In this document: in pieces, positions 49,933 through 55,769 of the stretch | How the letters are laid out: every line of letters begins with the position of its first letter | Position numbering within the stretch: the stretch's first letter is position 1 | NCBI GenBank assembly: GCA_904063045.1 | Contig: CAJFCJ010000019.1 | Span: 1,230,570 to 1,294,569 of the forward strand | Length of the DNA: 64,000 bases | From: Dimorphilus gyrociliatus | Lineage: Eukaryota > Animalia > Annelida | Direction of reading: 5' to 3' | The notes under the pieces: generated by a model | What the model was told of the DNA's origin: nothing | Databases searched by the model: none | The model's input: the letters and a program-made list of their open reading frames with translations, nothing else | Position numbers and translations under genes: made by a program

Positions 49933-51930
49933 CTAACGACTGCTACTTCTCTCCTGTTCTGGATCTTCATTATTTCTTACGGGTGATACATCTTTTTCCA
50001 CTGAAGCTGCTGGACTGGGTGATCGGTCCTTGCTAGCACTCTTTTTGCTCCTAGAACGAGATCTCGAACGCGATTGTTTTCCTTCGCTCATGGGGCTTTT
50101 CGAACGTGAACGAGAAGGTGATCTCGAGCGCGATCGAGAGTGATCCCTGCTGCCATTTCTTCGATTTTTACTGTGGCTCCTACTGTAAAAGCATAAATTT
50201 ACGCATTAGTTAATTTATTCAATATTACAAAAAGTATAAATTACTAACCTTCTTGATCTTGATTTACTCCTTGGACTTCTGCTCCTACTTCTACTTCTAC
50301 TTCTAGTGCTTCTACTCCTACGACTTCTGCTCCTACTTCTACTTCTACTTCTTGTGCTCCTGCTTCTACGACTCCGACTTCTGGTGCTTCTGCTTCTACG
50401 ACTTCTGCTTCTTCTACTTCTTGAGCTTCTGCTTCTGCTTCTACTTCTGAAACGACTAACTTATTAACTCTATAATAGTTTTTCAATTTAATTTTACCTT
50501 CTTCTTGAACGAGATCTGCTGCGAGATCTCGAATAACTTCTTCTGTCTCTGTATCTTCCCCTATCTTCAATCAGACGAATACGTCGCCCATTGACTTCGG
50601 TACCATCAAGCTTTTCAATGGCTGTTTTTAGGTCTCTGTAGCTTGCGAATTCAACGACTCTGTAATGTCAACAATAGTTAGGTTAAATGAAATTTTTTAG
50701 ATTATTTATAAAGGTTACCCTTCATTTCTACGTGTCTTATGGGCATCGGCATATGTTATTTCCCCGGCTTGTCTCATGTAGTCTTTCAAGTCCTGATTGG
50801 ATTACGAAAAGTAATTTTAAAAATATTCACAAAAGAATATTTTGCTTAGTTAAAAAAAGTAGGTATTTGGATGTAAACTAAGCAATAAAATAAATAAGTA
50901 TATAGGTTGTCAAGATATGCATCTCTCAAACTTAAAAAATTCATTATAATTAGCAGTCTTGGTAAAATATCCCCATATCATACGGCTGGACGATTCGTGA
51001 AGGCGATGGACCACGGATACGCCAAAACCACCAAGAAACTTCATAAGCCATTATGCTCGTCCACCACCATGTACGCACACGTTTGTCATTATTATTATTT
51101 AGGATTACATAGAATGCACACATGCACAGTTTTGTGTCTTTTGACAATCAGTTAATTTACCTGTGTGACTTTGTCACGTGACGTATCGCGCGGCAGGGAT
51201 ATTGTAAGAGGAACACAAGACGCATCGGACGAGACAACGTTTGGCTGGCTGTGGTCTACGCAGCGGCCTCTTTCTATAATACGCTCGCCCCGTCAACACA
51301 CACAACGTATTTGCGCCTCCTGTTCTAAATCAATTTTAAAAAATATAATTTTTTTCTTTCGAAAATGTGTTTTCAGAGTCTTGAAGCGCCCGTCGTTTCT
51401 CGATCGTATCGTCCGCTTCGCTTGATTCTACTTGCCATATGCTTGCACGTACCTGCCAGCTGCATCTAGACGACAGATTTTCCACTATCAGACGATACTC
51501 TGTTCGGGTAGGTGGACCATAACGGTCTCTTGACGATGGCGGGGGTCTTCTTGGTGGTGGACGGTAGCGTTCATCTCTCCAGTCAGGAGGCCCACGTGGT
51601 GATCTTCTAGCAAACTCTACTACAATTCTGAAAAAATAACGTTTTGATATCGTTTCAAAATATTCCTAATCAAATTATCAAACCTTTCTCCAAGTAATTC
51701 TTTTCCATTAAGTTCGTAAACAGCATCATCTGCATCTCGATGATCTTCAAATTCCTGAAATCATTGACGTTCCATAAAAGTATAATGGTTGTAATTTTAA
51801 AACTCACCACAAAGCCGAAATCGCTTTTGAGTAAAACTTCTCGAAGTTTGCCGTAACCTTTAAAGAATTTTTCGACATCCCTTTCGCGTACGCCATAAGG
51901 CAGTCTCCCAATATAAACCCTGGTAGCCAT
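49933..51930 (-). CDS. Serine/arginine-rich splicing factor of the SRSF4/5/6 (B52/SRp55) family
   Basis: RRM1 [27 protein letters not shown]; RRM2 [14 protein letters not shown]|[11 protein letters not shown]; RS domain ending at TAG 49933. Confidence 0.95.
51161..51324 (-). other. Candidate poison (PTC) cassette exon in the SRSF SWQ|DLKD intron
   Basis: gatttag|AACAGGAGG...CACACAG|gtaaat within the 660-nt intron 50793-51452; an in-frame TAG follows 16 codons. Confidence 0.65.
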
Positions 51931-53388
51931 GCGGCTGAAACAGAAGTAGGTCAATGAAACTAACAATGACGCATCGCCGTTATACCTGAGAGACGGCGAG
52001 AAATACAATAATACTTACATCGCTTTTATTCAGCAATTCGATACTTTAACTGATCTATCAAATTGCTCCAAAAAGAACGTTTTATTAGCACAACTTAGCT
52101 TATATGACGAACGAAACAATCACGCTCCAAACGGAACGCCGAAAGTGCTTAAAATGCGCATGCGTGAAGAACATGGCCGAGTATACGAAAAAAATTATTC
52201 TGAACGATTTAACTAATTTAAATTACTACTAATTACTAAATATAAATAATAAAATTTATTTATTTATTTGATATCGAATTGTCGATTTCGATATTTTAAT
52301 GCTTATCTAATAATATTTAGAATTGAACCTTAACCGCGGTTTTGAACTCGCCTCCGCCACAAAATTCCTCACGCTATCTAGACGTTCCTAATTCTAGTTA
52401 AAAAAAGCTGAATATCTGTCGATTGGTGTGAGTCATGATAGATCGGCAAACTTTTTAAAAGAAATAAGTAATTGTCGATTTAATAACTCTGGCTGAACAC
52501 CGAGTTGTCGAAATCAATTATTTGTAAGTGAATAGCTTTATATTTTACTTAAGTTATATTAGGGAACCAAATCCTTATTAATCTGTATTACATGAAAATG
52601 AATAAACTTAATTAGGAGTATTAATACTCCCCATCTATCTCAGCAGTTGAGCAAGACTTTCCCTATTTGTATACAGATTGAAAAAAACTATATTGAAACT
52701 TAAGGCCTCATAGTATAATATATGTTATACTAAAACCTGAAGTCGTAAAAGTACCTTAACTCCAATCTCATTTTCTCATACTCACTCCCTATCTCTATAC
52801 GAACTTCAAACGACAAATGCGTGTACTTGAACATACAAATAAATGCTGTGTATATACGTGAGCTACAAATGTATCAATGCAGTAGATGTGTATATACAAT
52901 ACGAGGATTTAACACTTATAGAATCTTTAATTAAGGCAATCGGCTTAAACATCTCTCTCAGCAGTGAAACTTCACTGTAAGTTTATTAATTAAACAGGCC
53001 TAATAAGTAATCATTCACATTTCTCTTTATATTCTATAATTAATTGCAGCTATTTTGTGACATGTATTGGTGAAAGAAAGACTAATAAGTACTATTCAGA
53101 GGTTCAGTAAACTATTAGAATGAATACAGTTATAACAAAATTGACACCTCGTTTGAGGAGGAAAAAGACATCGGCTGCAAGTAATATGGATACGGTCTGT
53201 AGTAGAATAATAGTATTTTGTTGTATATATCCTTAATTGTGAAGTATATGTTTTGATATATTTTGCTTAAAGATATCTAATAAAAATCAATAATTCATAT
53301 AAATCTTATCAGGAAGTCGACCAACTGTATATATACTTATATATTTATACAAATTTATAGTATTTAAAGGGAAAAATATATAACACAC

Positions 53389-53392
<4 letters not shown>

Positions 53393-53441
<49 letters not shown>
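53393..53441. repeat. (TA)n microsatellite
   Basis: Direct reading. Confidence 0.95.
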
Positions 53442-53444
<3 letters not shown>

Positions 53445-53941
53445 TATATGTTAGTATTTACGTTAATATTCAGAATTTATTTTATTTGGTTAAATTAAAA
53501 TACTCCTTTGTTCAGCAACCTACTAGCTTAGGCTGCTTTACCTTTCTATATTATCAATATTATTTTATGTTATAGAAAATTTGAGATATACGTTGATAGC
53601 AGACAGTATAATAATTTGATTTTGATTGTGGTTCGTTGATATATATATATATTTACGTAAATTGATATTGAAATGGGACATAGGTCACTCTAGGTTATGA
53701 TATTATATTAAAAGGTTACTATATAATTACATACTCAACATTAGATTAATTACTGCATAAAAAACGTTTGTATTTGAGAATACTTTTTACATGTTATATT
53801 TTCTCTATATTTGTATATATATGTATATATATGGCTTCGTTGCTGATTGTTAAAATATAACAAATACACATTCAATGATTACTTTATGATTTGTTCATGA
53901 ATCGATAAAAAAAAATTAAATAATTCTAATTGTTTCTACAG

Positions 53942-55769
53942 GACAAGAGCGATATTGATGACAATTTCGTTTATCCATTGGAAGAAAATCGTAACAACGT
54001 TCTACAGATTCCGACTTCGAACAGTGGAAACTCCTTATCAGCAGCTGAACAAAGTGAATCTATGATGATACCTACAAACGATAATTCAGCTATTCAAGTG
54101 GTACCCTCGTCCTCTCCCATACCCCCTGCCCCAGCTGTAAGAAAATCAGATTCTGATGATGTCTTTGTTGGTGAAAATGTTTGCGAAAGTCATGAGCATG
54201 GGGGGAAAATGGCATTAAACGATGTGTTTGGTCTTGACGTTGATTACATGTTTGAGCTACTTTTTACAGATTCACAGTTTTATAGAGATTTTTTAGCGTC
54301 TAGAAAGACAACTGAACTTATACAGACGCCCTGGCCGGTGGAATTTGACGAGGATGGTTCTAAATCAAGATTAATTACATATACACTATCTCTCAATTAC
54401 AAGATTGGACCTAAATCTACAAAGACAACTGAAAAGCAAACGATCCTTCCGGAATCGAAGCCGGGTTCGCATTATATTGTCGATGCAGAAGTTCATAATT
54501 TGGAGGTTCCATACGCTGACACTTTCTATACGATTACTAGATTTTGCTTGCTCAAAGAATCAAATAACAAGACAAGACTAAAGGTGCATTGTGAAGTAAA
54601 GTACAGAAAACAAGCATGGGGACCAATTAAGGGTTTGTGTCACTCAAAAAGCATTCTTTCTCTTCTTTTTTCTTATCTAAAGTTTTCAAACATGTTACAA
54701 TATGATAAAATATAAAATATATTGTAAATATTGTTTTTAGTGGTTGTGGGTAAATGTGCCCAACAGGGTTTGCCCGAAAATTTTAATCTTTTAGGTATGT
54801 ATCGAACGTTTTGTTCTGACAGGCTTGATTGAAAAAACTTCTTCTTCTGGGTTATCCGAGAATTTTAACTTGCTTGGTGAGACTAACTATTGCTAACTTT
54901 CCACTTTTTACTTTCTTTTATCGCTTTTATAAACATAATATATATTAAAGAAACTATTTTCTTGGTTTTCTTAATATATACATAAACATATTATAATTAA
55001 TATTAATTAATAATCCTATTAATTAATTTCTTTTTGTTTTTCTTATAATATTAATGATATTATCTTTAATTGGTTTTTGTTTCTACCCCCCCTCCCACAG
55101 ATATGTTATTTTTCATAATTAAAATGTTTGTTTTAAGCCGTACATTTAAGAAGAGAAGCTGATAGGAATCATGGATCGACGACGTCTAATAATAATAATA
55201 GCATGAACAATAGCACAAAGAAAAAATTGAGAAAACGCCATAAACAACAAAGCCAATCAATTGCTTCTAGCTTCGAACGACCTGCTCATATGGATGCGTC
55301 AAGATATTCGAGTCAGCCTTTGGCATTTTCTCTTAGTGCTAATACTTTGGCTCTCTTCCTTTGCTTCATGTTAGTACATGCACAAAAAATAAGAAACCTT
55401 TTAAATAAGCATATACAAACAATGACATTTTCAAACAGAATCATCCTTCTGATTTTCCTGAATGTATTCCTTTTCCTAAAGATTAGTCAATTGGAAAGTC
55501 AAACTTTACTTTTCTACAGGAATAGCGAACCTAGTATTAAGTAGGTTTATTTCCCTTATGTACGAATATGTTTTAAATTAAATTTTATGATTATTTCTTC
55601 TTTATATTCATTTTATAGAACTGACTGGCGCCAATTGATTGATGATGAAGAGAATATTTATAAAACTCAATCGGCAAAATGGAAGAAAGTTTTGTCGTCA
55701 TCACTTTTAATTTTAGATCAAATCAAAACGACTATGCAAACTTTGTATAAGCGTGTCGAAGAGATTTGA
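53942..55769 (+). CDS. GRAMD1: GRAMD1/Aster-like protein: VASt (StART-like) domain, TM helix and C-terminal coiled coil; 5' end uncertain (candidate first exon 53120-53194)
   Basis: LDVDYMFELLFTDSQF, VPYADTFYTITRFCL and VKYRKQAWGPIKG; TM LFLCF|IILLIFLNVFLFLKISQLE; tail KWKKVLSSSLLILDQIK. Confidence 0.85.
54741..54794 (+). other. GRAMD1 duplicated exon M1 (54 nt, phase 1-1): VVVGKCAQQGLPENFNLL
   Basis: ttgtttttag|TGGTTGTG...CTTTTAG|gtatgt. Confidence 0.8.
54823..54876 (+). other. GRAMD1 duplicated exon M2 (54 nt, phase 1-1): GLIEKTSSSGLSENFNLL
   Basis: ttctgacag|GCTTGATT...TTGCTTG|gtgaga; the closer match to the canonical Aster helix. Confidence 0.85.

Follow-up and report, generated by a model that had tools for sequence, protein, structure and literature searches.

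An expressed pair of mutually exclusive VASt helix exons separated by 28 nt in an Aster-like gene of Dimorphilus gyrociliatus

Aster/Lam proteins carry sterol between membranes. In this study, a 64-kb window of the genome of the annelid Dimorphilus gyrociliatus, by which the whole stretch of DNA analyzed is meant, was examined around a gene with a VASt domain. The gene corresponds to DgyrCDS11585, and the translation of its exon E2 is 100% identical to the deposited protein (P0001; 369 amino acids). E2 matched the Pfam family VASt/ASTER (PF16016) with an E value of 1.2e-34 over profile positions 2-142 of 152; because the match ends at position 142, the last profile positions fall in the two exons M1 and M2 with which this report is concerned. 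The closest solved structures were those of human and mouse Aster-C and Aster-A (6gn5, E value 8.9e-40), and the VASt protein is 39% identical to human Aster-C. The features of the locus are as follows.

53050-53194, forward strand: exon E1, with the start codon ATG at 53120 and 25 codons (RNA-contig joints 52976>53050 and 53194>53942; translation)
53479-53765, forward strand: alternative noncoding 5' exon joined to E2 (joint 53765>53942, depth 70; in-frame stops)
53942-54632, forward strand: exon E2, a low-complexity N-terminal part followed by the VASt/ASTER beta-sheet core, ending in ...KQAWGPIK in phase 1 (Pfam and 6gn5 matches)
54687-54740, forward strand: conserved 3' part of intron 2, before M1, approximately 87% identical to a diverged relative by alignment, compared with 60-65% for the other introns
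54741-54794, forward strand: exon M1, 54 nt, the putatively derived alternative helix exon, with AG before and GTATGT after; VVVGKCAQQGLPENFNLL with the carried G
54795-54822, forward strand: spacer, 28 nt, with consensus splice sites at its two ends (donor GTATGT, acceptor CAG)
54823-54876, forward strand: exon M2, 54 nt, the helix exon of apparently ancestral type, with AG before and GTGAGA after; GLIEKTSSSGLSENFNLL with the carried G
55138-55369, forward strand: exon E4, which completes the C-terminal helix and also encodes a basic linker and the first part of the membrane anchor (RNA joints; translation)
55439-55540, forward strand: exon E5, the remaining hydrophobic anchor (joint 55369>55439 in both RNA runs, X1 and X2; translation)
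55619-55769, forward strand: exon E6, the luminal tail and stop codon (joint 55540>55619; tblastn similarity to the C-termini of Tubulanus and Paralvinella)

At the C-terminus of the protein, approximately 21 hydrophobic residues, read by eye in P0001 across the E4/E5 junction, form a membrane anchor. At the N-terminus, an in-frame stop lies 5' of the ATG at 53120, so that a GRAM domain cannot be read in from further upstream. No GRAM domain was found in the transcript by Pfam, for which VASt was the sole match, and a tblastn search of the 64-kb window with full-length Lingula and Tubulanus Asters gave no GRAM similarity, the only matches being to the VASt domain and the C-terminal tail. The gene is an Aster-like protein gene encoding VASt plus anchor and not a complete GRAMD1; the Aster/GRAMD1 identity assigned in an earlier reading of the sequence alone (the sequence-only reading) is therefore borne out for the VASt domain and anchor but not for the full protein. 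An annotated Paralvinella homologue (P0091) likewise lacks GRAM. Transcripts from the alternative 5' exon would begin at an internal Met of the gene, where the deposited protein itself starts (MMIPTND). The public model DgyrCDS11585 begins at this internal Met, lacks the longer N-terminus from the ATG at 53120, and uses M1 without M2. Intron 1 contains a (TA)n microsatellite (53396-53442) at which the RNA contigs break. Upstream on the minus strand (49933-51950) lies a gene, transcribed in the opposite direction away from this one, that resembles an SR-type splicing factor, with an N-terminal RRM-like stretch and Arg/Ser-rich repeats, as read by eye from the list of open reading frames. The downstream neighbour, from 56006, is a hemicentin-like gene with VWA and many Ig domains, and the same order is found in the relative (contig L001, from 2900).

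E2 stops at 54632, in phase 1, carrying one base (G) over, and M1 and M2 are both phase 1 exons whose length is a multiple of three (54 = 3 x 18). The coordinates, the equal length, the shared phase and the 28-nt gap, all reported in the sequence-only reading, were exact on rechecking. M1 and M2 are identical at 9 of 18 amino acids and 27 of 54 nucleotides, with the likeness concentrated in the 3' half (19 of 28 nt by hand count) and the 5' half near random. Only 7 of 7250 pairs of stop-free 54-nt windows, set at the same 82-nt offset in the 64-kb window, reached an identity of 9/18. The introns seen to be spliced in this gene, taken from the RNA contigs, measure 69, 73, 78, 108, 176, 261 and 747 nt, and the spacer is thus less than half as long as the shortest of them (69 nt); the median intron of the D. 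gyrociliatus genome is 66 bp (PMC7854359). The earlier observation that the gap is well below the intron lengths nearby therefore holds against both measures. M1 also contains a stable internal hairpin (54747-54776; GGGUAAA...GCCC AACA GGGU UUGCCC) of approximately -13 kcal/mol, which is not significant against shuffled sequences; it is kept in the relative, in which a G-U pair is replaced by G-C.

Splicing was followed in one RNA run (X2) assembled into k = 31 contigs from the same organism, 12 of 13 contigs having at least 99% identity. Because the contigs are spliced, X2 is RNA; it may be the data behind the annotation of the gene. The junctions in these contigs are not phased on single molecules, rare variants are dropped and contig depths are poor measures of abundance, and it is in this sense that the following depths are to be read. 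The joint from E2 to M1 (54632>54741) had a depth of 513 and that from E2 to M2 (54632>54823) a depth of 667, while the joints to E4 had depths of 369 from M1 (54794>55138) and 959 from M2 (54876>55138). All four single-inclusion joints, which the sequence-only reading had proposed to count, are therefore present in X2, and all have GT..AG ends. The share of M1 in the junction depth lies between about a quarter and two fifths. Neither excision of the spacer (54794>54823) nor skipping of both exons (E2 to E4, 54632>55138) was found among the X2 contigs, in which rare forms can be missed. A marine metatranscriptome (X1; 95-99% identity), with coverage limited to E1-E2 and E4-E6, confirms the joints E1>E2, E4>E5 and E5>E6.

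A third transcript form, which the sequence-only reading did not predict, was also observed. A unitig at 54765-54851 (87 nt) retains the spacer at a depth of 496, comparable to that of the M1 form. It starts at the first k-mer that contains spacer base 1 and ends before the k-mers common to the E2-M2 junction, and it is therefore specific to contiguous M1-spacer-M2. Intron 3 had a depth of 140, no X2 contig was found for intron 2, and the mean of the bin 54612-54718 was fully accounted for by E2 and the two junction contigs. Since intron 2 has no contig and the bin mean is explained, most of the spacer-containing molecules must already be spliced on both sides and carry a 136-nt composite exon. 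In this form the frame is shifted and a stop is reached 12 codons after M1 (3 codons in the relative), so that no protein carries both helices. The depths balance at E4 (369 + 959 + 140 = 1468, against 1466) and at M2 (1163 in, 1099 out) but not at M1 (513 in, 865 out), because of which the retained form can be placed only roughly, at 10-35% of messages. The sequence-only reading had supposed that M1 would be spliced in and that the two exons would not appear together through retention or excision of the gap; M1 is spliced in and the spacer was never seen excised, but retention does occur, although out of frame. Taken together, the RNA evidence supports M1 and M2 as a real, expressed pair that is mutually exclusive at the protein level.

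The locus was compared with that of a diverged relative, represented by three genomic contigs (L001-L003) identical to one another. The relative has counterparts of both M1 (AVVGKCAQQGLPENFKLL) and M2 (GLIEKTSSSGLAENFNLL), between which the spacer again measures exactly 28 nt, and all splice sites are intact. The divergence between the two species is considerable, with synonymous sites of the gene saturated outside the exon pair: E2 shows 76% nucleotide identity with a pS of 0.66 and a dS of approximately 1.5, and E4 has a pS of 0.76. M1 stands out against these values as the segment with the highest conservation at the locus, with 92.6% nucleotide identity, a pS of 0.18, 17 of 18 amino acids identical (94%, including the split first codon) and a dN of 0.026. 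M2 shows 88.9% nucleotide identity and a pS of 0.34. Introns 3-5 are 60-65% identical, and at the intron rate the probability of four or fewer differences in 54 nt is approximately 2e-6. The spacer is 78.6% identical, and while its length is unchanged at 28 nt, every other intron has changed length. The tail that follows the frameshift of the retained form is not conserved. Low synonymous divergence in alternative exons is a pattern that points to embedded splicing signals, and the reduced pS of M1 and M2 suggests that these exons carry such signals. The conserved 3' part of intron 2 (54687-54740) is a candidate branch site or splicing-control element. The first approximately 24 nt of intron 3 (54877-54900), with two CTAAC motifs directly after the M2 donor, are also conserved in the relative.

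These observations are most readily accommodated by an old tandem duplication of the 54-nt helix exon of the VASt/ASTER domain, which very probably gave rise to a mutually exclusive pair in a GRAM-less, membrane-anchored Aster-like gene. In the mechanism envisaged, the 28-nt spacer would be too short for a spliceosome to assemble, with at most approximately 24 nt from the M1 donor to any internal branch point, and in-frame double inclusion would consequently be physically impossible. Both exons being multiples of three in length, double inclusion would otherwise escape nonsense-mediated decay. If the M1 acceptor and the M2 donor were both used, the spacer would stay in, and the frame would shift to the stop 12 codons on (3 in the relative). 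Steric enforcement by the short spacer, which the sequence-only reading also proposed, is a plausible reading by analogy with known clusters.

The spacer-retained form allows the same exons to be viewed in another way, namely as a dosage switch, in which joint use of the M1 acceptor and the M2 donor would yield the 136-nt composite exon with its premature stop, and M1 would chiefly be the entry to a product that is targeted for decay or truncated before the anchor. The depth of the retained-spacer unitig (54765-54851; 496) is of the same order as that of the M1>E4 joint (369), while intron 2 has no contig and intron 3 a depth of only 140, and the premature stop is found in both species, 12 codons after M1 here and 3 in the relative. 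However, M1 is an open frame with 94% amino-acid identity and a dN of 0.026 at a dS of approximately 1.5, which a poison-exon entry would not need; furthermore, the in-frame M1>E4 joint occurs at substantial depth, and conservation is lacking in the tail beyond the frameshift. This alternative is considered quite improbable. A broader proposal, which is also unlikely, is that the locus would act as a three-way switch, providing two anchored proteins with different pocket-gating helices and, through regulated spacer retention, an abundant third message that would either encode a soluble, anchor-less VASt protein ending just after the M1 helix or serve as a decay-coupled throttle.

It is also conceivable that exclusion is enforced by something other than the length of the spacer, either an RNA hairpin between the M1 donor and the M2 acceptor or plain competition between acceptors; the shortness of the spacer would then be incidental. 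In the RNAalifold prediction 54792-54800 is paired with 54819-54827, and the inner stem GAA/UUC is GAG/CUC in the relative, which amounts to one compensatory pair; the unusual conservation of the 3' part of intron 2 would likewise agree with another mode of enforcement. However, from the two sequences available the hairpin was no better than shuffled sequences (z = -1.67 here and -0.01 in the relative), and the length of the spacer is exactly kept while all other introns have changed, as expected if length matters or is constrained. Enforcement by other means is accordingly regarded as very improbable, and RNA structure was rejected as the enforcing mechanism because the hairpins were not better than shuffles.

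The duplicated exons correspond to a defined structural element. M1 and M2 align with SLIEKNSWSSLEDYFKQL of Aster-C in the 6gn5 alignment, and it is supported that they encode the 18 residues with which the long C-terminal helix of the VASt fold begins. For the canonical helix, the solved structures of Aster-C and Aster-A served as the reference. Modelled with AlphaFold (P0001 residues 40-235, from a 34-sequence alignment), the M1 form had a mean pLDDT of 91.8, a confidence that leans on an alignment of canonical sequences and therefore indicates compatibility rather than equivalence of the M1 helix. In this model, M1 occupies residues 152-169 of one continuous helix (model residues 148-185), and the model superposes on 6gn5 and 7azn with TM scores of 0.93-0.95 and rmsd values of 1.2-1.7 Å. 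Both the Aster-C alignment and the position of M1 inside one continuous helix agree with the sequence-only reading, which had placed the exons in the VASt C-terminal helix. In yeast Lam4, the pocket is closed off on the side facing the membrane by the C-terminal helix together with the Omega1 loop; both also bind the membrane, and lysines of this helix are required for transfer (PMC6940019). The basic residues around M1 and M2, the PIK before the exon and the K at position 5, are kept in both forms. M2 would provide the ancestral IEK-type helix and M1 a derived helix in the segment that, acting as in Lam4, would gate the pocket with the Omega1 loop and touch the membrane, and the M1 helix could plausibly alter sterol loading and unloading or ligand preference. 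A change of lipid specificity or sterol handling by M1 is a possibility drawn from this analogy.

The ancestry of the two forms was examined in homologues. An exhaustive search of 1.84 billion representatives, run without a profile, yielded 995 matches, and among the best 150 of these one (P0147) had no local match and an unreadable helix; besides this gene's own, no M1-like helix was found in the 149 readable helices, all of which were of the IEK type, like M2. Against a helix profile built from 62 distinct homologous helices, M2 scored +17.9 bits and M1 -9.6 bits. M1 loses an isoleucine that is 85% conserved (I3>V) and a glutamate that is 79% conserved (E4>G), keeps K5, G10, L11, F15 and L18, and carries AQQ in place of the SSS of M2, a stretch that is mostly x-W-S/A in the family. 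The sequence-only reading had stated that M1 introduces a proline and loses IEK; I3 and E4 are indeed lost, but K5 is kept, and because homologues mostly have E, D or Q at helix position 12, with neither the P of M1 nor the S of M2 among the 62 helices, the proline does not set M1 apart from M2. M2 is, judging from these comparisons, the ancestral form and M1 the derived one.

That M1 might be tolerated splicing noise from a decaying duplicate without a distinct function, which its profile score of -9.6 bits and the loss of the conserved I (85%) and E (79%) would allow, is barely credible, as M1 surpasses every other segment of the locus in conservation between the two species, synonymous sites included, its splice sites are intact in both, it makes up roughly a quarter to two fifths of the junction depth, and the deposited gene model uses it.

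The sampled relatives indicate when and where the pair of exons arose. One helix is common to all annotated RefSeq isoforms of Lingula (7), Ptychodera (16) and Crassostrea virginica (5). In genomic DNA, the annelid Paralvinella, the brachiopod Lingula and the nemertean Tubulanus each have a single 54-nt phase 1 exon at the same place, from which it follows that the exon is old. In an Aster-B-like gene of Crassostrea virginica (L008, 31065-31336), the helix acceptor is kept but the downstream intron has been lost, fusing the 54-nt exon to the next. No second copy of the helix exon was found in the flanking introns of Paralvinella, Lingula, Tubulanus or Crassostrea, the best non-self scores lying within background, and scans of metagenome contigs with exact and codon-degenerate patterns gave no match to the M1 core. 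The survey of orthologues for a duplicate exon, suggested beforehand, thus returned a single copy in each of these four animals, and within this sampling the duplication appears to be restricted to the Dimorphilus lineage. It is older than the split from the relative, since M1 and M2 share only 50% identity with each other but approximately 90% with their counterparts. A homologue with three tandem VASt domains was also noted (P0026; 683 amino acids), in which the helix segments are nearly identical.

The arrangement can be compared with several known systems. In Caenorhabditis elegans, five mutually exclusive clusters have spacers of less than 40 nt and exons that are all multiples of three: egl-15 5B/5A (14 nt), let-2 9/10 (30 nt), bet-2, gly-5 and gly-6 (PMC4165533). 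As in these clusters, M1 and M2 are homologous tandem exons with lengths that are multiples of three and a spacer apparently too short to excise, the excision of which was never observed; the genes and the phylum are different, however, and the abundant frameshifted transcript that retains the spacer here, seen in one run, is not highlighted there (PMC4165533). By this comparison, a too-short-intron mechanism at M1/M2 would fit the five nematode clusters. The known clash caused by a distant branch point is similar in that an upstream donor would sit too near the branch point that serves the downstream exon, but in that system a longer intron is involved, whereas the whole intron here is 28 nt. 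With vertebrate Aster-A/B/C (GRAMD1A/B/C) and yeast Lam/Ltc proteins the gene shares the StART-like VASt/ASTER fold and the C-terminal anchor, and M2 matches the IEK-type helix of the family; unlike them, it has no GRAM domain, and an alternative helix exon is neither known in them nor seen in the sampled homologues. Mutually exclusive exons are already known in other annelid genes, such as COQ-2 and myosin. The exons of COQ-2, found in helminths, annelids and molluscs, likewise swap homologous versions of part of a lipid-substrate site, but two specificities have been demonstrated there (PMC7434440), while for the Aster-like gene they are only inferred. A full-text literature search turned up no account of a VASt/Aster domain with alternative or mutually exclusive exons.

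M1 and M2 are a well-supported, expressed and conserved switch that would use a textbook mechanism and may have functional meaning. The public gene model is corrected, in that it contains only M1, apparently the derived exon, and omits M2, the likely ancestral one. The locus also provides a clean case, outside nematodes, of exclusion by a presumably unspliceable spacer, for which both the RNA and the exactly conserved spacer length speak. If the three-way switch were true, the worm would tune both sterol-transfer kinetics and membrane tethering from one gene that is already without a GRAM sensor. For the family as a whole, nature has here supplied two versions of this helix in a protein that is otherwise the same, a setting well suited to learning how the helix determines loading, release or ligand preference.
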